From Bigelowiella natans CCMP2755 (Eukaryota > Protista > Cercozoa), in the NCBI GenBank assembly GCA_000320545.1, contig ADNK01000517.1, forward strand, positions 1,556 through 65,555: DNA of 64,000 bases, written 5' to 3'. Position 1 is the first letter of the stretch. Each line of letters starts with the position of its first letter. The position numbers and the translations under genes are program-made. The notes beneath the pieces are model-generated. The model had not been told where the DNA came from and searched no databases. It worked only from the letters and a program-made list of their open reading frames with translations. Below are positions 3,559 to 45,155 of this stretch, one piece after another.

Positions 3559-4163
3559 GGGAGCAGCAACGTTAAAAGAGACTAAACCCCGACATGATGA
3601 TACATGAAGCGGACAGCCGACGATGACACAACAAACCATACGTACTGAAGAGGCTGCATCACAGAGTATACGTGTGTACTGACGTGGACAATTATCATCA
3701 CTATCTATATCACCACCATCATTGTCGTCTATCCCGGGTTGTATCGTATCCGATCCGACAGCAACGAATACCAAGCCACGCACTATTGCCTACTACACGC
3801 TTACTGCAGTGGACAACCGAGCGCGTTCTCTTCACGCTGGACCAAGTTTACAATGTACATGCTTTACATATATTTATGCAATGTATACTGTGTCTACGAT
3901 CATGACGAAGGCGAAATAAATCAATCTATATATTAACTGCACCAATGCATACATGTAGAAGTGCGAATGCACTAATAACAAGCCTATCTAACATACCTGT
4001 GTTATGTTGTGAATCGCAACCCTTAATCTGTTTAAGCACTTATTGTGACATGTTATTCATCATGGTTATTAGAATAATGTCAATCTAGCAATCTTGCATG
4101 CGTAGCAGATCGAGCGCATATACGCATCGTATATATCGTAAAGATCAAACAAGTACAATTTAA

Positions 4164-4410
4164 GCGCTGTAGCCGCGGCTTACACAGCTAAATTACAGAT
4201 TAGGACGACAAGTGAATAAGCTTAACTCATTCATTATTACACCCGTCTCATAGATCATATAGCTTTCTTGTAGCTAGAAGGATTCGAAGCGCCTGTCGTA
4301 GCACGTGCTGCTCGCATGCTAGTAGCATGCATGGCCATGGCGTACAATAAGTGAGACGGATAGATGCGTAATAATGAAATGATTGCATTTTTCAATTGTC
4401 ATCCTATAGC
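4164..4410. mobile_element. Degenerate foldback/MITE-like element with ~55-bp imperfect inverted arms
   Basis: Left arm TAGGACGACAAGTGAA...TTCATTATTACACCCGTCTCA (4201-4250). Right arm 4351-4406 reverse-complements to TAGGATGACAATTGAAAAATGCAATCATTTCATTATTACGCATCTATCCGTCTCAC. Homologous copies occur at 44090-44440. Confidence 0.65.
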
Positions 4411-4986
4411 ATGTACGACAATAGCAGAAGTCATGAAGAGCGGTGGCCATAGCTCTTATCTAGCTTATGTGCTGTTCATTCATTTCTGCAGTGGCATGCT
4501 GCATCTAGCTAGCATGCATCATCATAGTACGTATCGTAGCGTAGCACGCGGGGTTGACATATGGCTCATTTGTATCTTACTGTGTTCGCGTGTGTGTGCG
4601 TGTACATATGTGTTGTTTAGACATCTTTATGCGGCGCGATGAAATATACATATGTGGCCATGAACGACATATGCGATGCGTATTGTAGCTATGCATGCTG
4701 CATATTAGCGATGGTGGTACTGCCGCGTGAATAACAAGAATATAGTTCTACATGTTCGATTTCTGAAATGATAATGAGCTATAAAAGTGACGGATGGTAA
4801 TGCAGCGTGAAATTTTTATAAATTTGGTCCTGTAATAGCGATAGCCTAGAATCTTTGCCTCGGTGAAATCAAATTTCATGTTTGAGTTTTGAAACGCCTA
4901 CATTAAAGGCGGTTGATCGCAGTCTAATTGGGTCGATTGCACCTCGTTAAAGTAATACTTTAGACATCACTTTGACAGATCCATCC

Positions 4987-11710: not shown

Positions 11711-12951
11711 CTTTGGTGCTACCTATGTTGCTATATGTCACCGATATTCTTTTTCGCTAAAATTTACGGTACATGGGCAACTATGGTGAAATGAGAGACA
11801 AGGTAGTTAGTGAGCTGGTTTCATTCTATTCATGATAAATCGACTTTTCGAGTGAGGCTTTCTACCATCGGTGCAACCAAATGTTCCCCCCTCTTATCTT
11901 TCCCGCGTTTCTAACTTGTTATTTTGATCTAACCATGCGGATTCCCTCTTGTTCGCTACTTGATCGTGACTAGCACCACTAATTTTCAAATTAACATCTC
12001 TGTTTCGAGAAAAACTGTAAGCTAATCTTTACCTAAAACAAATGTGAGATGCTGTCGTACGTAAAAATTGATGTGCATCTAGGCAACTGCGCAAACAACT
12101 ACAGCTCGTGCGACTTTGAAATTTCCATAGATTTTGTCGTTTGTGCTATTCTTCACCCACCATCTTCAGCAAATGAATCAAATGAATGGAAATTCATCTA
12201 AGCGACACGGGTAAAAATTGAAATACGTTTCTTGAGTCCGTTGGCACGTTGGCACAATACCGGTATTCCGCCATGGTCACTTCGAAAGATCTGAGCTGTT
12301 TCCAAGCTACGTCATGCATTCACTTGCTGTCTAGAAAATTGCATTTTTTTTCCTCTGATGTCATCAAAGAAGAGCAAGAATTCAAGGAGTTTGTCTGTCA
12401 TTGTTTGCTGGCGTATCATCTGTCATTTTTGACTTGCTGCTTTGTCAAACAAGACACACAGAAGGATGCTCTGCCATCAAGTTCATGTGAACAATGTTTC
12501 CATTCTCCTCATTTCATCTGATGAATTGACTTTGCAATCAATTTTAGCCTTGTTTCATCAGCCACTTCGTGAAGAGGAAACTCGAATTACGTCTTAAGAA
12601 AAAGACGAGCTCGACGAACATCAAGCCACTCATCAAAAAAGTTCCCGCGCTCGTCGCATGAAAAGTATTTTGCAAGCGCGAACAAATGTCACAAGATGTG
12701 CGCCGTGAGCGCAAAATTGGAGGAAAAGGGCTCCTTATCAGCTTACTCGGCTCCTGGGAACACCTAGAAGTCCCGCAAGTGTCGTTCCAAATGAGAGTAA
12801 TTGAGGAGAGCTGAATGCAAAGACATCAGCAAGATCAAGACGTATGACAGGTTAGAGCAATAACGAGGGTCTGAAAAGGACTATAGTGCTCGCTGGAAGA
12901 GGCGTCAATATCCAGCAAGCCACCAATATCCAGCAAGCCACCATTGTCACT

Positions 12952-14386
12952 ATGATGTTCGACCGCAAATATTTCAGTGTAGATTGTGAATCCCGTGAAT
13001 GCTCATCCCCAGGATCAGACCCAGCACACCTTAAAATGTTTGAACAGCCTGAGACATCCAGGATGTTCAAAGAAGGACTACTAACGGGCAACTTTGAGCA
13101 ATCCTATTTACCACATCACAACCGTTTTGGAAACCTGACGAATGAAGTACATAAAGGGTACCATAGTTGTCAGATTCAGCAGCAACAGCTCCTAGAAGCA
13201 AGACGGAAGAGGCATACGTTTGATTTTGTTTCAAGTTCTAGTGCTTGTGGAAGTCAACAATCGAGGATTATTTCTAAAGCAAATCGTATGAATCAATTAA
13301 GAATGAAGAAGTTTCAGGTGCAAATCCCTACAGTATATAGTCGGTTGGGCAGTCAGGAAGAACAGAAAAATTGGGAAGTAGCAGACCTTCTGCATCCCAG
13401 CCATAAGCTTCAAAATGTTTCAATTAGACACTGGCCACAAAAGCTCAATTCCGAGTCCCATAACTTTCCAGCTGTCATATATGGAGCGGTTGACACAGTG
13501 CCTGTACTGGGAAAAAGTAGTTTGAGGCACACTATCATTGATCAACAGTATAATTTCGATCCAAGCACACAAATGAGAACCAATTATAACGGATCCGCTT
13601 ATAGAAAACCAGTGAACACTTTAGGCCTGAGAGTAATTGAGGGTACCATCAGGGCTGAAAATGTTAATCATAATTTCAAACGGCGAAAAAATTCATCTCA
13701 CCCCAAGCGTTTCTCACCTCTTGAACGAAATGGAGGTGTAAATATCGAAATAGTCAGACACCTTGATACCACCCCTGACACAAAAAATTTGGGTTTCTGG
13801 CAACGCCAGTCGGTATCAGAATTTCAAACGGCTTCTCCTGAGGAACAAAAAGGCTACATAAATTCCTCAGAAAACGTTCTTAAACGTACATCATTGCGTC
13901 GTCAACGTTCCTCGCCTGCAAAACTGTCGAAGTCTCCTCATGAAGGATCGAAAAGAAGAAGATTATTTCACAAACATTCTTCAAGCCTTCTTGTTTCATC
14001 TCTACATTCACATGTCTCTGTTTCGACAGTCCCAAAAAGAGAGACCACAAAAAAAAGGTTTCCATGTCCGGAATGCGGAAAACTATTTGCTAGACGATAT
14101 TACGTGAACCAACACATGAGAATTCACAGAAATTATTATCCATTTCAATGCAGCTACTGTGTGCGCAAATTCAAGCACCAGTCAAATCTCATCGCGCATG
14201 AACAGGTGAATTAAATTGACGACAAAACCATCCAATCATCGATCATTAAATGTGGGAATCTATCTACTTGCATGATCTCAGGGACACACGAAACTGTACA
14301 GATTCAAGTGCTCACATTGTCCCTCTGGTTATCCACGACGAGACAGGCTGGTTCGTCATTTGAAAAACAAACATGGTTGCAAATGA
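12952..14386 (+). CDS. C2H2 zinc-finger protein (3 C-terminal fingers), 2 exons
   Basis: CPECGKLFARRYYVNQHMRIH and CSYCVRKFKHQSNLIAHEQ, then intron ~14206-14281, then GHTKLYRFKCSHCPSGYPRRDRLVRHLKNKH. TGA at 14384-14386. Confidence 0.85.
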
Positions 14387-15795
14387 CCACTTGCTCTGTC
14401 TTCGTTTCTTCGACAATGCAGCATCCGTCCAATGCACATGCACGCATGCACAATGCAAATGCAGGGCTGGATGTTTTTGAAGAACATCATGCGCTAGTTT
14501 TGCGCGATTTTTTTTTCCACCTGCAGCAAATGCGCACAGACGTGCGTCAGCGCTAGCAGCGGCGGCTACAATGTCTAGATGTGCAAAAATGCGCAAGCTC
14601 AGCGCATTCTTTTAGCCATGATGTTGTTGGGGACGTTCATGATCGTGCATGCAAAAGAGTTCGTGTGCTGGAGCTACGCTCACACAAAAGCTCGTTGCAA
14701 AATCGAAACGGGCCTGTCACATGACAATTGATGTCAATTGTGGACAACGCGTGATGCACGTGCATGCCAATGCACGTCGCCGTCACTGCTAGACTTGGAC
14801 TGACGCAATGCAATGTGGCTAGGTGGGTTGATGGCGAGCCAACAGGTGACGCACTCGGTTCAAAAAGCGATTTCTGATTCATGTTGTCAATGTTGTCAAA
14901 CGTGTTAGTCAAGACCAGACCAGCAGTGCACGCAGTGAACCACACACACCTCTGGACCTGTCCAGTCTCTAGAGTCTGTCTAGCTGTGCTAGCTGTGTGC
15001 GAGGGTTGCGATGCGGGCTGACTAGCTAGCTAGCTGACCTTCACTTGCACACGCACAACCTCGCGCAGTCTAGCAGTGCCAGAGTGTGCCAGAGTGGTCT
15101 CAGGCATGCGCACCACGCACGCTGCATGCTAGGCTGGTGAATGCACACCTGGCACGTCTAGACGTGCATTGAGCTGTGCTAGCTGTGGTTGACGTGCCAC
15201 GTGCACGTGTGTCGTGTCGTGCACTGCGCTAGCTGCGCGCGCCACGTTGAGACTTGTTGTGTCTTGTGGAAACAACGCACTGACCTCGAACAATGAACAA
15301 TGAACAAAGCATTGATGCAAAAGCACTGCGTGAGCAACAACCACATGGGAGACGTGCACAAACGTGTGGCAGTGCCTCAACAAAAATCACAGCGAGGACA
15401 ACTTGTCAGCACCCTGTTGGTGAAACAATGAATCAATGATGATGAACCACGTTTCCAAAGTGTTGCAAGACACTTGCAGTGTGCGAAACGGAGTGCCTCG
15501 AACCAGCTTCAGTGGGGTCCAACCGGAGAAACCGGGAGGAATTTGAGATTGGTGGTCTGGCCACAGAGGAGCAAAGGGACTAGCAGCAATGTGGCGACAC
15601 GTGCGTGGCGACGACGTGGAGCATCCACTCTGAGAAGGATGATGAACAAGAAATGCAGTGCCTCGAACTGGCTTCAGTGAGGACTGACTAGCAAACTAGC
15701 GGGGTTCATGCAAATTGGCACGAACTGAACATTGAATGCATCACAACTAGCAGCCAATGACGACGACGCAAAGCATCCATCCTGAGCAGGAACTT
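14387..15795. other. TpA-depleted, CTAG-retaining intergenic island (strongest example)
   Basis: Manual count: 24 TA dinucleotides in ~1.4 kb, of which 20 are CTAG, 2 CTAC and 2 TTAG. TG, CA, TGCA and CATG are abundant and CpG is retained. Confidence 0.9.
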
Positions 15796-16026
15796 CCTAA
15801 CAGCCACGTCCACACGGAGATCAACGACGTTTGTTTCTAGCCAATGTCCTGTGACTACGAGTAGGAAAGCTAAGGCCTCAATGTCGCAGGATGAAGTTGC
15901 AATCAATTTCTACAATGTCGTCGTCAAATCTCGAATTCATTGCAAACGAACATGTCGCACGGAGAAAATGGCAATGATTCTTTGAAATCTGGGAAACAAA
16001 TTTTTGAATTTGATTTAGATGCCACC

Positions 16027-16767
16027 ATGAGGCTCCGCCTACCCCTCGCGGTACTCTGTGCGCTCCTTACGAGTCGGCTAGCCTGCTGTACGGAAATCAA
16101 CAGCACAGTCATATCTACGGTCTTCCATTCATTACGAAATATAATGTGGCCTAAATTTGAAATGCAAAGTGCAAGCTTGGAGACATCACACATCCTGACA
16201 TGTTTCAATTTACAATCTAAGGACTACGAGCCCTTGCAGAGAAGTCTAGACCAACAGGCTGTGCGACTGAAGTCATACAGCAACCAAATAGGTAATAATT
16301 TATCGTTATAGGTAGGAAACCTGTAATCATTGAGAATTGCTTGTAGCTGCTCACCAGGAAGCTGTCGGAAGAGAGTTACAGCAAGCCACTCTAGTTGACA
16401 CGAGGAACTGGGAAATCATAAAATCACATCAGGTCTCTGCTACCCGTTTCAGATAATTTGCTACTTTGTGTAATTATTAACATTGTTAGGCATACCTTGC
16501 ATCTCTCAAAAATCAGTATGATGCAGTGAAGTCGGATGCTCTGACAGCGGTAGAAAATGTGGCAAATGTGATAAAAATTGTATTTTGAGTGAATATATGC
16601 CTCAGCTTCAACAAGGAATGGCTGACGTCCATATTCCTCCTGCTCCTCCTGCAACACCAATGGCCTCTGGAGCCGCTGTTTTCCCTCAAATATATTCTGG
16701 CTACCAGACACAAATTTATTCAAATTCTGTGCAAGCTCCTTTTCCGATTACTCCTCCAGTTGTTTAA
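16027..16767 (+). CDS. Possible small secreted protein (hypothetical, probably spliced)
   Basis: GCCACCATG start with signal-peptide-like MRLRLPLAVLCALLTSRLACC. Pro-rich terminal ORF at 16585-16767. Exon linkage not established. Confidence 0.3.
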
Positions 16768-16862
16768 TACTTGGCGTATTATCCCAGAGGCACGTATTTT
16801 CCCACTAAAATATTATCATCGCGGCGGTAGTCCTAAAAGTTGCTACAATCATGACATGCACA

Positions 16863-22901: not shown

Positions 22902-24283
22902 GTGTTTTCGAAAAAGTAGTCTCCGAAATTGGGAAAATGGGGATACGAAAAATAACACATGCTAGGACCCTCTGCGATTGTGACAACTATGAGCTTCTTC
23001 ATGTGACTAAGCATGCAGGAGTAGCTTCTCTGGTAGTTCTAACGTTCTAAGAGGTTAACCGAGTGAGTAAGCAACGCCACATTGTTGAGCAACGTTCTCT
23101 CGTTCGGGGAAGGGGGGTTCCAAAGGTTACGTTCCCGTGTTTTTGCGCCACGTCGGATTACGTCTAGGCTGAAATTCGACATAAATGCACTCCCTTTTAT
23201 AGACTGCGACATCACGGAAATAGCTTGATGTTTTCATCAGCATTTTTCCCAAATAAAATGTTGTCGTTCGAACCAATCGCCGATCCTTTTCTGCACAATT
23301 GGCATTCCTCCCGTAGATCTACTCGCCCTGTCGATCGGCTTGTCAACAGCCTGCAGCCCATCGGAATGTCGAATTGACACGAATCTTGAGCAGAGTGATC
23401 CTTGAGCTCATTCAGTAATGCAGGTTCTGTTCAGCATTCTTCTTCTTCCTTCAGCCGCAGATCAGCCACTCGTTCAATCTGACATTCGGCTGCACGTCGA
23501 CATGCACCATTCTGGCATTGGAATTGCTTCGTGCATCGTTGGCGCTTGGAACCACCATCCATCATTGCATTGATCAATCAATTCGTCGTTCATTCAAGTG
23601 GTGAGCCAGCACACTAATCGTCGGTTGCACTGACGAGCGCTGTCACGAAGGAAGAGTTGGAAGGAGAGTGGAAGAGTGTGAGGAAGAAGAAGAAGATGCA
23701 AAGAAGAAGAAGAAGAATGAGAAGACGAAGCAGCACGTGGATTAGAGGAAGTCCAGAAATCATAGAAGTGTGTGTGCGTCTATACATCACCCTCAAAAAC
23801 TGCACACCACTAGACCAGGTTCTCCCATTCTGATCAAGCCTGGTGTCTGACGAAGTCACGGGGCTCACGTTCATCGATCGTGCTGAGGTGCGCACAGCGG
23901 AAGCACCTCATCATGGACTGTGTGAGTGCGTGCATGTGATGTGTGTCCTTGTTGATCGAGCACAATTTGATCACAAGAAGGTGCAGTGATCACAACTCTT
24001 ATACTCTACCTTACTAGCTAGACTGAAGGAGACACAACGATGCCATCCAGCCAGCGCCACAAACTCACTCATTTTTCAACATCAGCACTAGACATAGCAG
24101 GCAGGGAGCGGACAAAGCTCCGCAACAAACTGCTCTGCACGACCAAACGCGGACTGGCGTCAAGAATTTTGGGCCGCTGTGCTCTGTGCTTCATAGAGCT
24201 TATGCATTGCTACATCACATTGCCAGAAATTCAGGATTTCATGTGTGCAAACTTGCATCCATCCAGACAAACAAGTGAAGGCT

Positions 24284-24525
24284 CTGCCCGCTCATTAGTT
24301 GCACATTGATTTTGTTCATTGCTGACAGTGATTGCATGCATTGTGTTCTGTGTTGCAAATGTCTGCTCGCTCATCAGCTGCACACTGCTAGCATTGGTTT
24401 TGTTCATTGCTGACAGAATTTGCATGCATCGTGTTCTGTGTCACAAACATCTGCTCGCTCATCAGTTGCACATTGGTTTCATTTATTGCTGACAGAACAT
24501 GCATCGTGTTCCATGTTACAAACAT
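24284..24525. repeat. Three-copy ~80-bp degenerate tandem repeat
   Basis: Units start at 24284, 24363 and 24451 (CTGCYCGCTCAT...TTGCTGACAG...GCATYGTGTTC...CAAA). Most differences are TA/TG/CA swaps. Confidence 0.9.
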
Positions 24526-33668: not shown

Positions 33669-34251
33669 AAATCAGGTGCAGCGGTACAAAGTTCATTAGA
33701 AGAATAAGCGAACTTCACATTGATGAGAAAACTAGTAGTCTTTGGTAGAGATTACCCTCCTGATACATTCCGATATCTGCAGCGTTCGTCTGCAATATTT
33801 ATCTTGCAGGGCTCCCTAAATGCATGAATCTTTAGAAATTTTATGGTTACACTATACTGTGAAATCAAATTTAACTATTATTATTTAATTGTGTACACGG
33901 CATGTTTGTAACAAGCACACAAAAATAGACAGCAAAGCAATGCATGTGGTATCGTCTGAATCGTATTATAGTCATGCGATGATGATGTGAATGAAAGCAG
34001 GTGAGGAAAAAATGTAGCGCATGTCTAGCTAGCTAGATGTCTACAAATGCACCTGATCTTGTCTAGTTGTTGGCACATTGCATTAGCGTGTGTTCGTGTG
34101 GCACTCATGCCACGAGCGAGCGTGTTGACTGGCCACAACATGTGTGACTCTAGGACTGCATGTGCTAGTGTGGCTACACCATGACACGGCTAGATCGACG
34201 GCCGCTATGGGACGCGCTCTTTGATGATGTGCACGTGCGCCAACATCTCTA

Positions 34252-34577
34252 TGTTGCGCGTAAGGTGTTCACAGGCCGAGGCGCTACGTGCACAAGTAGG
34301 CAGGGGGGGGGAAAGGCACGTTTGCTTCCTTTTGAAGAGTTGTGTTTATTTTTATTAAAGATTATATTTTTATTAAATCGTGCACTGCGTAATCATTCGC
34401 GAAGCTTTCGCGAATGCCGCCGCACGTGGGGCAGCACACTTCCGGTGTGCTGCCATGAGTCCCGCCGGAACCCACGTGCCTATGCTGTATTAATATCTAC
34501 GTTATCTATATTCTATATCCGCGACAACCCCTTTGTTGTCGCACGTGACTTGTGCCCGCGTAGTGGTACGCGCTACA
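34252..34577 (-). repeat. 3' LTR (326 bp)
   Basis: Identical by eye to 39642-39967. 11-bp imperfect terminal inverted repeat TGTTGCGCGTA/TACGCGCTACA. AATAAA motifs on the element strand. Confidence 0.97.
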
Positions 34578-34585
34578 CCTCCCCC
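34578..34585 (-). other. Polypurine tract
   Basis: GGGGGAGG abuts the 3' LTR on the minus strand. A further purine run GGGAATAAGGAAGGAAGGAAGGAG lies just upstream. Confidence 0.85.
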
Positions 34586-34628
34586 AAGTCACGTTGCTCC
34601 TTCCTTCCTTCCTTATTCCCTTAGACCT

Positions 34629-37600
34629 TCATCGCTTTCGGAACTTCACCAACCACCAGGTAATAGATTCCTCTCTAACCTTATCTCCTTTGTCGCTTAC
34701 CCAGAACTCACCTTCGTCCTTAGGTTCGTGTCCATACCAGCCCTCTGCATCAAGGTCCCCCAGGACCTTATACCAGTGCTCAAAGGGTAAGTCGGGAACA
34801 GCTAGGTAGAGTAGCTGATATTTTCCGTCCTTTATTTTCATAGCTACCCTCTCCATATTTCGTAATCCAGGGTAGCCTAGATAGACAATCTTCATGCGCC
34901 AATCGTCGTTCACCCTGACCTTATTGTTTCCATATTCCACATCGAACTTAGGTCGGGGTCCTAAACAAGGCATTGCTCGCTCCCACACAGTAGGGTTTAC
35001 TTTAACATCCTCTAGGAGCTTCTCACCGATATCATAATTCTTTAGGTGACTGATGTGGCGCAAGGTGACCCTGTTCCCATCATAGATGTAGTACTGCTTC
35101 CTCCCCTTCCTCTCGGTAACCTTTGCAACGCCACCCCAGAAGGGGTCTTGTTTATTTCTCGATCTCAGATTTACCTTGGCCCTAACATACTGTCCTTCCT
35201 TTAGAACTCGGCCATCGTACGGGACCTTCTCGTCTTCGCTCTCGGTATCGTCGTCGTTGTCGTCGCCTTCTTCCCTCTCCTTATCCTTGATACCTCCCCC
35301 AGACGTGAAGGTGTCGTTTACTAACCCTTGTATCTTGTCTGGTGTGGTGCTATTTATCCTGCTTAGGTTGGCCAAGGTGCGGTGGAGTCGCTCTACCTTG
35401 GAGTTGGACTGGGCATAGTATACAGGTGAGGCATCAATATTAGGGTGTGGTAGCTGTAGAAGAGAGGTCTCATTATCCACATGTAACTTCTTTGGTATCT
35501 TGTTTATGCTAACTTCATCAGGGATAGCCTGGAGCTCAGACTCCCAGGTACGGTAGCAGTTAGTAAGCCTCTGCTTATATAAGCCTTTGTTCTTCTTAGC
35601 AACGTTGACCTTGATAATCTTTTTAACCCAGCACTTTCCAGTGGCCACATCAACGAAGGTAAGGTAGTGATAGCCATCGTACTTATAAACATCAATTTGC
35701 ACGATATCTAAGAAGTTCCTTGCTTTGATTTTCTTAGATGCACGGCTCTTGCTGGACTCCTTGGTGGCGACGCCTGCCGCCTTCAAGCTGGAGCACCTGC
35801 AGCCACGCAGGTATGTCCTTATCTCTTTTAGCTTGTAGGGCCAGTAGTAATGGTAGAGTAGAGCAGTGATATGGTTTTCTCCTACGTGTGCAGGTCCATG
35901 GGCGGTAAAGAGAAGGGCTCCCCTGGTCCGCCGTGGCACGTAGGTACGCCTAACATTATTAGTGTATACATATATCCTATCACTAAGTACCTCATGCTTG
36001 TGTTTGTATTTATCCAGGTGTTCTTGAAGGTGCTGGAGCTCCTCTGGCTCAGGCAGGAAGTCGCCGTCCTCGAAGGTAATCGCGTTAACCATAGGGGTGA
36101 CCTGGGTAGGGACTTTCTTTTCGAACAGCCTGCTGAAATAGTCAGCAAGCTGCTTGTCTCCTGGTGCGTAGACCACTGTCCTCTTGTCCCTAAACTCTTC
36201 CGTGTCCGCCCTCATAGCTGCATACTCATCGTTAGGCGCTTCGAGCTTGCGGTCGATGCCTAGGAGGGGCTTGTGGTCAGTCATTAAGGTGAAGCTGGGC
36301 ACCGACAGCAGGTAGTATCTTAGTTTCCTCTGCGCCTCAGTCATGGCTTTATACTCTCCTTTTGTAGGGCTGTACTTGGCCTCAGCTGCTGTGCAGGCCC
36401 TGCCCCACACCCGTATGATCTGCTGGTCTTGGGTAAGTACAGCAGCCATACCTAGCTTAGACCAGTCTGTCCATAGGGTAGCTGGTCTAGTAGTGTCTAG
36501 CTTAGCATTCAATAGGGTGTTGCTGCATAACTTTATTAGGTTATCGAAGTGGGCATCAAGGCCAGCCTTGGCCCACACCTTAGCGAAGCTGAGGCCTACA
36601 GAGTTCTCCTTCCGGTAAGCAGTAGTAAAAGCAGCTGCAGTCCTAGCGTAGGTAGGGGAGAACCTACGTAGTATCCAAGCTGCAGTCTGCAAGAATGACT
36701 TTAACTCCTTTGCATTCTTAGGTTTAGGGGCTTGCTGTAGTGCTGCTACTTTCTCGGGGTTTGGGGTGATGCGGCCTTGCTCCAGGTAATATCCACACCA
36801 CTTGATTCTTGTAGCTAGGAATGTACACTTCTGCAGTCTAATAGTAAAACCGAAGTGTGCAAACCTAATAAATATATTTTCCAGGAGGAAGATCTGAGCG
36901 ACGACTGTGTTGGTACATATTATGTCATCATCCACATACACAAACACAAACACCCACAACACAGACGCCATCCCATCATGTGTGTATGCCCTGTAGTTCT
37001 GACTACTGAACGCATCCCCTGATATGCTTAGGCCGTAAGGGAATACGACGAAGTGCCACTTCCTGTGCCTGCTGGAGAACGCGGTAATGGGGCGGGAGGT
37101 TTTGTGGATGGGTGTCTGCATGTATGATTCATTTTTATCTAGGGAAGAGTAGTATTTGTATCCTATGACGTGTTCAATAACGTCATCTATCCTTGGTGTA
37201 GGTGTCTGGATCCTCTTTATTACTCGGTTGTGGCGGATGAAGTTGTGCGCCAGGCGGAAGAAAGGGTAAGTAGGTTTCTTAGCTAGCACATGTCTCACGT
37301 TCCATGGTGAGTTGCTTGGCTCTATCTTCCCTTCCTTTGCCCATTCATTGATCTGCCACTCTATCTTTTCCCAGTCCGCTTCCGGTCGCCTATGTTCTGG
37401 GTCATTGATGATGCACTCTTCGTATCCCTTCTTTAGCTCGATCTTTACTGGGGTAAGCTTGCTGGAGGGCTTCGTCGTCGGCTTGGTGATGTCAGAGTAC
37501 TTCTCGTTTAATATTTTATTAATGTACTTTTTGCCTTTGTCGATATCCCAATCATCAGCTGGGGGGGTCTTGTCCAGTAGCTCCGTTATCTGTCGGATGG

Positions 37601-39602
37601 TCTTGCCGGGGTTCTTCTTCCGTAGCTCGGTAGGTGTAGGTAGCTTGTTGTCCGCTAGGTCCATAAACTCTAACGCATTAACGCTTGACTCAGAGGTCCA
37701 CTCGTCAAGCCGTATCATGTTCTGGCTGATGGTCCTGCCTGACTTCTTTGGCAACTTAGCAAAGTATATCTTGTGATTGTAGAATGATATGATCCCCCCT
37801 AATTTTTCTAGGGCATCCTGTCCGAGGAGTAGTTCCATGGATAAAGTCATGGCTACTCGGGTCTTGATTTGGGTCTCCGCGTCGCTGCCAGGTATCTGTA
37901 GCTTTAGCATTAGCTCACCGACGGTCTTCATGGAAGAGCTTCCGTCTGCTTGAGCATATTTACGTTCTTTCTTAGTCACTTGATCCAATAGTCCTAACCT
38001 TCTTACTGTGCTTAGGCTTATGAAGGACTTCGGCATGCTGCCACTATCCCAAAGGGCAGGTAGTTTCTTGTAGTCTCCGTAGCTGTCTTTAACTTTAACC
38101 TTGGTCATAGCAACTTTGATAGTCCTGTTAGCGTCTTCGTCATTAATGTTGCATACTCCTAAGTTCTTTATGTCGTCTAGGGTCATGGGCTTGTCTTGGT
38201 CCTGCGTTGCTGGTACTGCTGTCTTCGTCGGCGCCTGCTTAAGGTGATCTAATATTCCGTTTATCTGCTGCTGTATAGCATTGATACTGTTCTGCTTTTT
38301 GTTCTTATATTTATTGTTCTTCCCGTTGTTGCTGCCTTGCCATTTGCTGTTGTTATATCCTTGTCCTCTGCCTTTCTTTCTCTTTAACTTCTCGTAGTGT
38401 TCGTTGAGCTGCCTGATCGTCATCCTGGGTCGTCCTTCTTTCCTGTCTCTGCAGTCTTTAGCGGTGTGTTTCCCTTTACGTGAGCAGTATCCGCAACGTC
38501 GGTTACCTTCCCTGTCCTTGTACCAGTCTCGCTGCGGCTTAATAGCGTTAATGTTTCCTATGCCAGGTACCTTAGGGCTGGTAAACTTGCGGTCCTGCTC
38601 CTGCTCGCGTAGGGATATAGCCTGCACTGCTGCCTCCATCGTGGTGTAGCCTTTCTCCGTAACGTAAGTGGATTCCTTTATCTTTAACTTGAACTCTTCA
38701 AACCTTGCCTGATCATCACCTGTGTTGTAATTAAAATCATGTAGTTCGTCGATCATATCCTGGAAGCGCGTGGCAAAGTCTCTAACAGGTTCTCTCTCAT
38801 GCTGCATCATTGCTCTGTATTTTCTAATAGCCTGGGGTAGGGAGTTAGCATCCTGTTCATTTACAAAAGCCTTCATTATCGCCTCAACGTCTCGTAGCCC
38901 ACTAACTGTAGTGTGTATTTTCTCTAGCTGCCTGATCCGGGTCCTGCCTGTCTCGTAAAGGTCCATGGCTTGCTTTATTATAGCTAGCCATTTGAGCTTG
39001 TCGTTTTCGGTGGGGTTAGGGGTAAAGTCGCAGAGTATACTCCTAGCGTTCTTCCACCACCTCCTTGCCTCACCTCTTTTCCCGTTGTATTTCGTTATCA
39101 TAACCGGTGCTGTTTTAACAGACATGAACTGGGTGTTCCGCTGTACCGGCTGCTGCTGCTTGACGGTGCTCTGGGTCGTCCCCCGCGAGGCGCCCAGACC
39201 CCCGTCGTTCCTAAACAAAGCTGCCCACTCTGGAGGTAAGTCTGCTTCGTAATCCATGATGTCCTGCATGATAGCTGCCCAAACATCATGTGTCTGATAC
39301 TTGTATTCTATCGATACTTTCAGTTTGGCGTAGTTGCTCGCCCTGGGTCGCAAGGCTCGTAATGCCATTACGACCTTCTTGCTTTCGGCGGCCACGTCCT
39401 CGTCGTCCGCCTCGTAGAAGTTCTCCAGTGCCTCTGCTGCTGCATCTGCTTTCTTAATCCCGGGTGCTGGTCCCGGCGGTGCCTGTGGAGGTGTTCCTCC
39501 TCCTTCCTTAGCGTCCGTATCGCCCTTCCTTTCCTGTTTCTGCTCGTGCCCTTGCACGGCCTGCGAGCCAAAGTCCTGCTGTTCTTCTAGCTGCTGTGAC
39601 AT
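34629..39602 (-). CDS. Gag-Pol polyprotein, 1657 aa, with extra C-terminal Dam/DIRS-methyltransferase-like domain
   Basis: Zinc knuckle CGYCSRKGKHTAKDC; protease ALWDSGS; RT FPYGL...YVDD; RNase H TDWS..E..TDHKPL..ADYFSR; integrase HHCC, VQID..VDNE..SNSKVER; GPY/F-like region; then 126 extra residues. Confidence 0.95.
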   Translation of the reverse strand: MSQQLEEQQDFGSQAVQGHEQKQERKGDTDAKEGGGTPPQAPPGPAPGIKKADAAAEALENFYEADDEDVAAESKKVVMALRALRPRASNYAKLKVSIEYKYQTHDVWAAIMQDIMDYEADLPPEWAALFRNDGGLGASRGTTQSTVKQQQPVQRNTQFMSVKTAPVMITKYNGKRGEARRWWKNARSILCDFTPNPTENDKLKWLAIIKQAMDLYETGRTRIRQLEKIHTTVSGLRDVEAIMKAFVNEQDANSLPQAIRKYRAMMQHEREPVRDFATRFQDMIDELHDFNYNTGDDQARFEEFKLKIKESTYVTEKGYTTMEAAVQAISLREQEQDRKFTSPKVPGIGNINAIKPQRDWYKDREGNRRCGYCSRKGKHTAKDCRDRKEGRPRMTIRQLNEHYEKLKRKKGRGQGYNNSKWQGSNNGKNNKYKNKKQNSINAIQQQINGILDHLKQAPTKTAVPATQDQDKPMTLDDIKNLGVCNINDEDANRTIKVAMTKVKVKDSYGDYKKLPALWDSGSMPKSFISLSTVRRLGLLDQVTKKERKYAQADGSSSMKTVGELMLKLQIPGSDAETQIKTRVAMTLSMELLLGQDALEKLGGIISFYNHKIYFAKLPKKSGRTISQNMIRLDEWTSESSVNALEFMDLADNKLPTPTELRKKNPGKTIRQITELLDKTPPADDWDIDKGKKYINKILNEKYSDITKPTTKPSSKLTPVKIELKKGYEECIINDPEHRRPEADWEKIEWQINEWAKEGKIEPSNSPWNVRHVLAKKPTYPFFRLAHNFIRHNRVIKRIQTPTPRIDDVIEHVIGYKYYSSLDKNESYMQTPIHKTSRPITAFSSRHRKWHFVVFPYGLSISGDAFSSQNYRAYTHDGMASVLWVFVFVYVDDDIICTNTVVAQIFLLENIFIRFAHFGFTIRLQKCTFLATRIKWCGYYLEQGRITPNPEKVAALQQAPKPKNAKELKSFLQTAAWILRRFSPTYARTAAAFTTAYRKENSVGLSFAKVWAKAGLDAHFDNLIKLCSNTLLNAKLDTTRPATLWTDWSKLGMAAVLTQDQQIIRVWGRACTAAEAKYSPTKGEYKAMTEAQRKLRYYLLSVPSFTLMTDHKPLLGIDRKLEAPNDEYAAMRADTEEFRDKRTVVYAPGDKQLADYFSRLFEKKVPTQVTPMVNAITFEDGDFLPEPEELQHLQEHLDKYKHKHEVLSDRIYVYTNNVRRTYVPRRTRGALLFTAHGPAHVGENHITALLYHYYWPYKLKEIRTYLRGCRCSSLKAAGVATKESSKSRASKKIKARNFLDIVQIDVYKYDGYHYLTFVDVATGKCWVKKIIKVNVAKKNKGLYKQRLTNCYRTWESELQAIPDEVSINKIPKKLHVDNETSLLQLPHPNIDASPVYYAQSNSKVERLHRTLANLSRINSTTPDKIQGLVNDTFTSGGGIKDKEREEGDDNDDDTESEDEKVPYDGRVLKEGQYVRAKVNLRSRNKQDPFWGGVAKVTERKGRKQYYIYDGNRVTLRHISHLKNYDIGEKLLEDVKVNPTVWERAMPCLGPRPKFDVEYGNNKVRVNDDWRMKIVYLGYPGLRNMERVAMKIKDGKYQLLYLAVPDLPFEHWYKVLGDLDAEGWYGHEPKDEGEFWVSDKGDKVREESITWWLVKFRKR

Positions 39603-39613
39603 TGTTAGTCAAA

Positions 39614-39636
39614 TCGTTTCCCGTGTGTGGAAGCCA
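39614..39636 (-). other. Primer-binding site (tRNA 3' end complement, Glu/Asp-like)
   Basis: TGGCTTCCACACACGGGAAACGA begins 5 nt inside the 5' LTR boundary. Its complement TCGTTTCCCGTGTGTGGAAGCCA resembles T-loop, acceptor strand, G discriminator and CCA. Confidence 0.7.
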
Positions 39637-39641
39637 AAGGT

Positions 39642-39967
39642 TGTTGCGCGTAAGGTGTTCACAGGCCGAGGCGCTACGTGCACAAGTAGGCAGGGGGGGG
39701 GAAAGGCACGTTTGCTTCCTTTTGAAGAGTTGTGTTTATTTTTATTAAAGATTATATTTTTATTAAATCGTGCACTGCGTAATCATTCGCGAAGCTTTCG
39801 CGAATGCCGCCGCACGTGGGGCAGCACACTTCCGGTGTGCTGCCATGAGTCCCGCCGGAACCCACGTGCCTATGCTGTATTAATATCTACGTTATCTATA
39901 TTCTATATCCGCGACAACCCCTTTGTTGTCGCACGTGACTTGTGCCCGCGTAGTGGTACGCGCTACA
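39642..39967 (-). repeat. 5' LTR (326 bp)
   Basis: Identical to the 3' LTR and followed by the TCTA target duplication. Confidence 0.97.
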
Positions 39968-40473
39968 TCTAGCTAGCTAGATCTCCGATTCAATGCGTGC
40001 GCCACACTGAACGATGTGCCAATTGCGATGTGCTGCAAGCTTGTTCTAGAATGTTGCACACACATGCATCTGCTACACACGCAGATGAGTCTGAACCATT
40101 CTTGACAGAAATTTGAACTGAAAACTTCCCATTTTCCCCCCCTTGTTCATCAGAGTCTTGTTATTAAGTAGCGACATAGACCAGCCTATCGCCAGACACA
40201 GTAACAGATGGGATTTTTCATCTCCGTGAGAAAAACGGGTAGTAACGGTATTTGGAGTGGACAAATACGGGTAGTGACGGGAGTAGTAATCCTTTCAATT
40301 TTTAACGTTCCACACATAATGATCGATCCCCCTCTCCTTGGACTACCACACCAGCTGCCTGATTAGGTGGCGGCAAGTCATCCTTCATCTCACTTCGTAG
40401 TCCACAGTCTGGATTAAAGCAAATATCTACCGAAGGATACCTCCAAGACCTTATTGGGACATTATAGCGAAAC

Positions 40474-43933: not shown

Positions 43934-44089
43934 TCTGAACGTGCAGGTCTTCAAGCAGATGCGCATCTTTTGCGGTGCGACACACTGCGCGTGCCGCACG
44001 ACATCGACAACAGGGCATGGATGCTTTTGAATGCATGAAACACACAATGGACATCGTAGCGGAGACCAACAGATTCAACATTAGTGCTG

Positions 44090-44440
44090 TGGCCGTTGCA
44101 TATTGCACAGCTACATGAGGATGACCATTGAACAAATTTGATTATTGATTCATCACATCCGTCTTACAAATGGGCGAGACATGTACAGATGCAACCGCGC
44201 TGCAGCCGCTGCTTGGCACAGCATTGCATGCATTGCATAGGATGACCATTGAAAAGATGCAATCACTTCATCACATGCATTGCACCCGTCTCATGCACAC
44301 ATACGTTCATGGTATCCGCTGCAACAACACGCACGCTGACATGTGAGACGGATGTCATGAATTGATCAAATCTTTCCAATTGTAATGGTCATCCCAATCC
44401 ATACCAATGTAGCTGTGCAAAGCTGCTGCGGCTACATGCA
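44090..44440. mobile_element. Degenerate foldback/MITE-like element: two direct arms plus one inverted arm
   Basis: GGATGACCATTGAA...TTCATCACA...CCGTCT at ~44119-44168 and ~44239-44294. Inverted arm GTGAGACGGATG...AATGGTCATCC...TGTAGCTGTGCAA at ~44343-44420. Same family as 4164-4410. Confidence 0.7.
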
Positions 44441-45155
44441 TGCTAGCATGCAGCGCTCATGTTGTGTCATGTGCATGAGGCTGCTAGCACGCTGCTGTAT
44501 ATAGCACGGGCAATGCGGCAACTTTGAAAATCGTGCTTCGCGCGCGGCGATCCATGCGCCCTCCGATCCCGGCCCTAGCTAGTTAGTAGACTGCTACACA
44601 ACGTCAGGCGGCAGCCATCACATGCTAGCATCATGGTCTACATAGATGAAATTGTTTTGTGCACTGCCTACGAATCCCGCTAGCATAATTAGCCAGCTAG
44701 CAGCAGCCCGCAGCGACTGGTGATGTGCATCACATATATCATGACGTAGTGCCACCACTGCCACCACACGCACGAGGCCTCCCACGTACTATCATTGCTT
44801 CCACCGCCAGATATTGAGTATGCTAAGCTAGAAATAAACCACGTTGGAATATTATTTGATGAATAACAATAATTCTCATTTAGCAGCAGAATTAAACAGG
44901 CCTCTTCGCTCCGGATTCGAAGAAAACATTATGTTATGGTGATTTATTGTGCTCGGATCCGCGTTAGGCGAGGTTGTTTGGAGGACAGAATATAAAATGA
45001 GGTATCCAATGTACTTTACACTAATTTCCTCAACACTCTCAAGAAGAACCCTCTTCGCCCTTTGTAGCACCTAAATTATATGCCCTTTGCATTAGGATTT
45101 TCCCCTGATTTTTCAGAAAACGCGTCGAGCAACAATTTGCCACATTCTAGCCATT

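Follow-up and report, generated by a model that had tools for sequence, protein, structure and literature searches.

TpA hypermutation and CTAG insertion very probably shaped a TpA-poor, CTAG-rich intergenic island in Bigelowiella natans

To date, only one preprint, on Bigelowiella natans by Mettrop et al. (2026), describes a heritable, region-targeted mutator that changes A:T to G:C specifically at TpA. In mutation-accumulation lines of this organism, TpA is converted to TpG or CpA at about 1000 times the background rate in certain silent regions. In all, 302 nuclear point mutations were recorded, and 231 of them lay in the genome of an integrated giant virus (scaffold_10:336000-521500) or in a virophage insert (doi 10.64898/2026.01.13.699255). 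The mutations there were almost all A to G or T to C, all at TpA, and on either strand (doi 10.64898/2026.01.13.699255). The inserts shown to be hypermutated measure 186 kb (giant virus) and 25 kb (virophage), and hypermutation was active in some lines only. The same work reported 124 clusters of 1-kb windows in which TpA is depleted and CpA+TpG is enriched, and its authors proposed an ADAT2-like adenine deaminase as the candidate enzyme (doi 10.64898/2026.01.13.699255). Here we analyze a stretch of 64,000 nucleotides of the B. natans CCMP2755 genome (contig ADNK01000517.1, positions 1,556 to 65,555; hereafter, the window), in which the intergenic DNA at positions 14387 to 15795 (the island) has almost no TA outside CTAG. 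The hypermutation itself is already described in the preprint, and the island is a further member of that class. An earlier reading of the sequence alone (the original prediction) had proposed for the island a region-targeted conversion of TpA to TpG or CpA, on both strands, modulated by flanking bases and aimed at silent or repeat DNA. Such a process is what the mutation-accumulation experiment measured; the accompanying statement that no pathway with this signature was known does not stand, since the preprint describes one. What we add is a tetranucleotide re-analysis of the experimental mutations, their strand symmetry, the link between measured rates and the TA that survive in islands, and the finding that insertion continually re-creates CTAG, which is at the same time the slowest target.

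The island resembles the inserts of Mettrop et al. in that it lies in the same organism, and is depleted of TpA and enriched in CpA+TpG with CpG left untouched. Part of it gave no reads in one RNA run, and it carries repeats. It differs in scale. The preprint describes the 186-kb and 25-kb inserts and clusters of at least three 1-kb windows, whereas here a spacer of 1.4 to 1.7 kb between ordinary genes is near saturation. Fungal repeat-induced point mutation (RIP) shares several features with this process: in the nucleus of a eukaryote, repeated or foreign DNA undergoes transitions that are heritable, limited to certain regions, and specific for a dinucleotide. In contrast to the process seen here, in which A:T to G:C changes destroy TpA and raise GC, RIP acts mainly on CpA, where C becomes T, so that TpA is gained and GC falls. 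The TpA excess that marks RIP is not found at this locus: the observed/expected (o/e) ratio of TpA is 0.30 in the island and 0.82 elsewhere in the window, GC is raised, and the measured events are A:T to G:C.

A recount returned exactly the tally behind the original prediction. The island holds 24 TA, of which 20 are CTAG, 2 are CTAC, and 2 are TTAG; between 14941 and 15795, CTAG accounts for every one of the 15 TA. We took our expectations from the rest of the window, which has 60 TA per kb, 4.3% of them in CTAG. At that density, 84 TA are expected in the island. We found 4 non-CTAG TA where 81 are expected (Poisson, 1e-29) and 20 CTAG where 3.6 are expected (2e-9), the latter being a density 5.5 times that of the rest of the window. 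Given the CTAG share there, the probability of at least 20 CTAG among 24 TA is 3.7e-24. From 14330 to 16052 (1722 bp), every TA has a 5' C, a 3' G, or both; the next longest stretch of this kind in the window spans 367 bp. The excess of TG and CA, the plentiful CpG, and the ordinary TA content nearby were also borne out: TG o/e is 1.84 in the island versus 1.11 elsewhere, CA o/e is 1.60 versus 1.15, and CpG o/e is unchanged (0.84 versus 0.82). The palindromes CTAG, CATG, and TGCA are enriched. With the thresholds of Mettrop et al. (Rho TpA of at most 0.43 together with Rho CpA+TpG of at least 1.52), a sliding scan flags 14001 to 15750, and both thresholds are passed at 14501 to 15500 (TA o/e, 0.31 to 0.37; TG+CA o/e, 1.70 to 1.86).

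We mapped the positions in Table S2 of the preprint to contig C3187, where the virus insert was found through its capsid gene. A single unique offset placed all 206 scaffold_10 TpA mutations on a TA of this contig, which proves that the genome analyzed is the B. natans reference. CTAG makes up 223 of the 6169 TA and took none of the 206 events, whereas 7.4 were expected (Fisher p = 0.0009), in keeping with the predicted survival of CTAG. These data show that the rate at CTAG is strongly reduced, not necessarily that CTAG is fully immune. At the low end, events per TA were 0.010 for CTAC, 0.012 for GTAG, 0.018 for TTAG, 0.020 for CTAA, and 0.024 for GTAC; at the high end, they were 0.062 for ATAA, 0.065 for ATAT, and 0.067 for CTAT. 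A Poisson model gave rates of 0.48x for a 5' C and 0.37x for a 3' G, each relative to A. Both flanks were significant (p = 8e-4 and 5e-7), A/T flanks were favored, and a 3' G was the least favored base (0.37 to 0.44x).

The original prediction had supposed that a flanking base blocks the reaction on each strand and that CTAG survives because both strands are protected. We found that flanks do modulate the rate but that a single flank is no block: CTA and TAG contexts took 20 of the 206 events, and the class CTAT/ATAG ranks with the most mutable ones. Within reverse-complement context classes, the two strands were equally mutated (chi2 = 5.4, df 6, p = 0.5). This indicates that susceptibility is set by the duplex tetranucleotide and not by one flanking base per strand. 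CTAG is spared as predicted, but not through a block by each strand's own neighbor. The context rule (A/T flanks favored, CTAG essentially exempt, strands equal) thus argues for recognition of a duplex site and against a single-strand neighbor preference, and it provides a specificity fingerprint for testing candidate enzymes. The main text of the preprint mentions neither CTAG nor tetranucleotides nor any flanking context beyond TpA, and it does not describe the CTAG insertion scars (X-CTAG-X) presented below (doi 10.64898/2026.01.13.699255). A search of the wider literature found neither the CTAG exemption nor these scars described.

ADARs and the TadA/ADAT deaminases also turn A into G with a strong preference for a 5' U or T. 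In tRNAs, U33 always stands before A34; for ADARs, the preferred neighbors are a 5' U and a 3' G. The mutations measured in B. natans differ from ADAR editing in that a 3' G is disfavored, the strands are equally hit, and the change is inherited in DNA. Of the ADAR-like pattern, the 5' T requirement is present, and the 3' G preference and single-strand action are not. In a family search of the genome, we found TadA/CMP-deaminase-type domains at 6 loci and one ADAT1/ADAR-type domain at one locus, with no obvious expansion. The preprint's own candidate deaminases are Bn78255/Bn77986. Table S2 of the preprint also lists four T to C events outside TpA (three at ATG and one at ATT), all of them at ApT. 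Two of the events come from one line and are spaced by two bases (scaffold_10:450383 and 450385), which hints at clustered or processive action.

The same ranking of contexts was found in the long-term footprint. Using the context-neutral thresholds of the preprint, we selected 31 islands (33.5 kb) and compared their TA density with that of normal DNA. The island census covered 149 kb plus the 200-kb virus contig, a sample enriched for loci of R1, a dispersed repeat family that also lies in our island. The density ratio was 0.01 for ATAT, 0.06 for ATAA, and 0.06 to 0.12 for most classes. It was 0.14 for CTAC/GTAG and 0.16 for CTAA/TTAG, with GTAC within the range of 0.14 to 0.16, and 2.14 for CTAG. 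Density by context was negatively correlated with the measured rate (Spearman, -0.85; p = 0.0016), also when CTAG was left out (-0.80). In our island, the TA contexts that survive (CTAG, CTAC, and TTAG in the core, joined by CTAA and GTAG at the edge) are the five slowest contexts measured. The TA series at the edge, from 15796 to 16052, reads CTAA, CTAG, CTAC, GTAG, CTAA, CTAC, TTAG, CTAC. All 8 are in the five least mutable contexts (P = 6e-5), as expected under weaker exposure to the mutator.

The evidence on the direction of change comes from repeats in and around islands; the ancestor of the spacer at 14510 to 15287 is not among the sequences compared. The original prediction had proposed to examine the mutation spectra of repeat copies. 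We compared 27 copies of R1 and found that TA, TG, and CA alternate at the same sites. At site 144, for example, 6 copies have TA, 14 have TG, and 7 have CA, and several sites have only TG and CA. At the three CTAG sites of R1, TA is kept in 13 to 18 of the 27 copies, and the changes comprise 31 transitions and 0 transversions. CpG positions of the R1 consensus are not hypermutable, having changed at 0.105 per site-copy versus about 0.10 at other sites. A few sites have CG beside TG and CA. In these repeats, the substitutions lead from TA, and not from CG, to TG/CA. An 88-bp tandem repeat of three units at 24283 to 24525 has TG, CA, and TA at one site and TA versus CA at another. We judged the presence of both TG and CA at one site insufficient as sole proof of a TA ancestor, because AT/GC majority sites give similar AC/GT doubles and because CG can also give TG/CA. 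The argument on direction rests instead on the retention rates and on the direction of the experimental mutations. A pair of foldback or miniature inverted-repeat transposable element (MITE)-like copies at 4140 to 4430 and 44070 to 44460 proved too diverged within the window to serve as a comparison of a TA-retaining with a converted copy. The TA-rich copy at 4140 to 4430 has about 40 other genomic copies, at only 75 to 77% identity, and this divergence would fit a conversion of TA in most of them.

Protection alone, as originally proposed, cannot explain the density of CTAG in the island. CTAG is indeed the slowest context, but its excess over the rest of the window also needs a source, and we found that insertion scars add CTAG. 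At least 10 of the 20 island CTAG lie in insertions of 8 to 9 bp that consist of CTAG and a target duplication of 4 to 5 bp, giving the form X-CTAG-X, in which X is a direct duplication of 4 or 5 nt. The sequence pattern places the scar cluster at 14548 to 15237. Intact scars are located at 14548 to 14561, 14571 to 14582, 14815 to 14826, 14964 to 14977, 14976 to 14987, 14984 to 14997, 15066 to 15077, 15154 to 15165, 15174 to 15187, and 15224 to 15237. There is also a (CTAG)3 run at 15022 to 15033, and decayed scars are found at 14948 to 14959 (acctCTGGacct) and 15075 to 15086 (agtgCCAGagtg). Recognizable scars account for 157 bp, about 9% of the island, and identical 4-mers flank only 1.2% of the other tetramers in it. 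Across the 149 kb of the census, 121 of 569 CTAG have the form X4-CTAG-X4, against a baseline of 1%. Another 14 are flanked by identical 5-mers, and 3- and 6-mer flanks are at baseline. The decayed forms X4-CCAG-X4 (42 of 497) and X4-CTGG-X4 (29 of 533) are likewise above baseline, the remaining one-letter neighbors of CTAG are all at baseline, and each scar lies in a distinct context. About a third of the recognizable scars have decayed from TA to CA or TG, which indicates that CTAG is slow but not untouchable. The duplicated target X has a C-N-N-G consensus within cCNNGg and is weakly palindromic.

Individual insertions can be followed between related sequences. Scars are present in some R1 copies and absent from others, with single-copy insertions in L017 and L018, and one of the three units of the tandem repeat at 24283 to 24525 alone carries a 9-nt insertion (cactgCTAG). 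A paralogous form lacks 36 nt that hold three of the island scars. In the paralogous locus (G000:C760:3603-3837), 31 other letters replace the 70 nt at 14962 to 15031; three DNA runs also yielded the paralogous form, as an alternative contig whose depth is that of single-copy DNA.

We rejected the idea that ongoing hypermutation leaves scars as a side effect. Of the 223 CTAG in the virus insert, which is actively mutating, only 4 are X flanked, and the 21 de novo indels listed in the preprint include no CTAG-type insertion. These data indicate that scar formation is separate from hypermutation. Many of the insertions that arose de novo in the mutation-accumulation lines have ACA at their end (GACA, CAACA, ACA, ACACA, and longer), and this AC-rich insertion bias is separate from the CTAG scars. 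An ordinary host-type island lies at, and just beyond, the right edge of the virus insert (~190 to 194 kb of C3187) and has 3 CTAG, 5 CCAG, and 1 CTGG scars within ~500 bp. The 185- to 190-kb bin of the same contig has a TA o/e of 0.11.

X-CTAG-X resembles excision footprints of the Tc1/mariner type, which also combine a short duplication of fixed length with a constant filler; here the duplication is of 4, sometimes 5, bp, and such an arrangement surrounds the constant remnant in the 121 CTAG counted above. It differs from them in that no donor with matching termini was found in the 349 kb searched. X-CTAG...CTAG-X pairs numbered 123 and were not enriched over a shifted control (108), and inverted termini occurred in only 2 pairs, both of low complexity. 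A literature search returned no known superfamily that joins a 4-bp duplication to a CTAG filler, and we know of none. In enterobacteria, CTAG is scarce, a feature associated with very-short-patch repair. There, too, CTAG is set apart by a context-specific bias of mutation or repair, but the bias runs the other way from the enrichment seen here, B. natans is a eukaryote, and the cause is another one.

Taken together, these data make it very probable that the island was driven near saturation by the TpA to TpG/CpA hypermutation of B. natans, with CTAG as the slowest target and with further CTAG added by insertion. According to this model, an intergenic spacer comprising a 3' untranslated region (UTR), about 0.8 kb of silent DNA, and R1 fragments would have been exposed to the localized mutator. 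The mutator would read the duplex tetranucleotide, so that A/T-flanked TA would be lost first and the slowest contexts would remain. A second process would insert CTAG with a 4- to 5-bp duplication at cCNNGg-like targets, and the resulting scars would persist because CTAG is the slowest mutator target. The island may have become a target through silent, repeat-bearing chromatin. The chemistry may be adenine deamination in DNA, with the ADAT2/TadA-like enzyme of the preprint as the candidate, and the scars may be footprints of a cut-and-paste element, a transposase-like enzyme, or a nuclease. A route through thymine modification is conceivable as an alternative chemistry; a search of the genome for the Tet_JBP family gave no match but is uninformative, since its controls gave none either. 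If hypermutation did saturate the island, the process reaches beyond giant-virus inserts and has also saturated kilobase-sized spacers beside ordinary genes. CTAG, the only TA word that the mutator spares, is also the word that insertion writes. This would be no coincidence if one CTAG-recognizing machinery acting on silent chromatin, such as a domesticated transposase or nuclease, both wrote CTAG and, by binding or marking it, shielded it from the duplex-reading mutator. This is a speculative and rather unlikely extension; if true, a coupled system that writes and erases would shape thousands of host intergenic spacers in addition to viral inserts.

Could the composition come instead from the way in which the island was built? 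CTAG insertions of 8 bp, slippage, and TA-poor retroposons might have assembled a spacer that never had ordinary TA. The recognizable scars, the many short tandem duplications, and an R1 majority consensus without TA outside CTAG agree with this, and a CNNG target preference alone would raise CA, TG, and GC and lower CC and GG. However, the scars occupy a small part of the island, and the TA-free zone spans unrelated types of sequence (the end of a coding exon, a 3' UTR, the spacer, and R1). Moreover, the surviving contexts track rates measured by experiment, R1 copies have TA, TG, and CA at the same sites, and the mutator has been directly demonstrated in B. natans. We consider assembly of this kind improbable. 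Less probable still is selection that purges TA from regulatory or terminator spacers (as TATA-like, poly(A)-like, or nuclease sites) and keeps CTAG as a functional motif. The islands are intergenic, often directly beyond the end of a gene, and rich in the palindromes CTAG, CATG, and TGCA, as selection would have it, but R1 is the only sequence common to islands at different loci, and CTAG arrives as scars at arbitrary positions and then decays. The same signature is also found in the silent integrated giant-virus genome, where its mutational origin was measured directly.

Decay of methylated CpG (CG to TG/CA) would account for the excess of TG and CA and for the few R1 sites with CG beside them, and the scarcity of TA would then be unrelated. 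But CpG o/e in the island matches that outside, CpG in the R1 consensus did not change more quickly than other sites, loss of TA cannot result from CpG decay, and the de novo events that were measured are A:T to G:C changes at TpA. The chance that CpG decay is the explanation is close to nil. So, too, is the chance of a sequencing or assembly artefact in the reference, against which the original prediction had proposed a check with Illumina reads. Nothing was found in favor of an artefact: three independent Illumina DNA runs (2021 and 2025) gave contigs identical to the reference, with zero differences, over 13000 to 15463 and 15801 to 16853. This refutes an artefact for these intervals, and the sequence is real.

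Several observations weigh against saturation by the mutator, or limit how far it can be taken. Multiplicative flank effects predict 2.2 CTAG events, with P(0) = 0.11, so that zero events also fit a reduced rate; a CTAG immunity beyond these effects cannot be claimed from 206 events. In the island, CC and GG are depleted (o/e, 0.49 and 0.59) and GC is enriched (1.42). Conversion of TA to TG/CA does not yield this pattern, which needs the scar process or another cause. The R1 majority consensus has no TA outside CTAG, and part of the TA poverty of the copies may therefore be inherited. The original prediction had named such a consensus as a point against itself; the point holds for the consensus, and the copies still show TA, TG, and CA at the same sites. 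In addition, 0.8 kb of the island is without recognizable foreign origin, whereas the preprint ties the process to viral or foreign DNA. Finally, no de novo mutations were observed in this island, and the three Illumina DNA runs showed no change within it; almost no susceptible TA is left there.

The TA-free zone begins within a C2H2 zinc-finger gene on the plus strand. The 3' part of this gene is an open reading frame (ORF) at 12886 to 14386 (Pfam zf-C2H2, E = 3.6e-11). Its long exon ends at 14205 and is followed by a GT-AG intron at 14206 to 14281, which is supported by RNA reads with loose ends at 14206 and 14279. The last exon, at 14282 to 14386, has a TGA stop at 14384 to 14386, with the frame read from the sequence. 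The final 57 nt of the coding sequence (14330 to 14386), which encode the last finger, are already inside the TA-free zone. The preprint reports that a zinc-finger Pfam family is enriched among TpA-depleted coding sequences (doi 10.64898/2026.01.13.699255). The 3' UTR of the gene, at 14387 to 14509 on the plus strand, has an RNA depth of 21 to 29 up to and including the bin that ends at 14509; from 14510 on, the depth is zero. It is transcribed and TA depleted, and its single TA is the CTAG at 14494.

The spacer at 14510 to 15287 has TA only as CTAG (16), CTAC (2), and TTAG (2). Words such as TGCA, CATG, ACGTG, and GCAC and short local duplications are abundant in it, and it is unique in the genome except for the partial paralog mentioned above. 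In one RNA run, no reads were found over 14510 to 15415. The status of the zone as silent, foreign, or repeat DNA is thus mixed: 14330 to 14509 is transcribed, 14510 to 15287 is without recognizable foreign origin, and 15288 to 15825 is repeat.

An array of truncated R1 copies lies at 15288 to 15825, on the minus strand according to its RNA; first mates are oriented as for the minus-strand LeuD gene. Within the array, TA occurs only as CTAG, at 15581, 15689, 15697, and 15748. R1 copies have one end in common, with a GAACAAT-type short tandem tail, and a variable other end, so that by its sequence R1 looks like a retroposon. Read depth (14,000 to 42,000, versus 57 to 130 for single-copy DNA) puts the copy number at about 250 to 330. 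In 27 of 27 other loci (L002 to L028), R1 is located at the same edge, and in one orientation, of a TA-free, CTAG-bearing island of 0.5 to 2 kb. At these 27 loci, several R1 fragments often stand in a row, and normal DNA begins directly after the variable end. The arrangement points to growth of the islands in part through serial insertion of R1, or to targeting of islands by R1.

Beyond the array, the edge of the island extends from 15826 to 16052, as judged by its TA contexts, upstream of the next ORF. A putative first exon of the downstream gene lies at 16027 to 16292 on the plus strand, with an ATG, a hydrophobic N terminus, and a GT donor near 16293. It had no Pfam match and no expression in the RNA run examined; ordinary TA content resumes at this exon. 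An Rfam scan of 14000 to 16300 at E of at most 1 returned no RNA family. Elsewhere in the window, another CTAG-rich, TA-poor island, at 33967 to 34261 and 39957 to 40162, is split by a Ty3/Gypsy element at 34021 to 40140.

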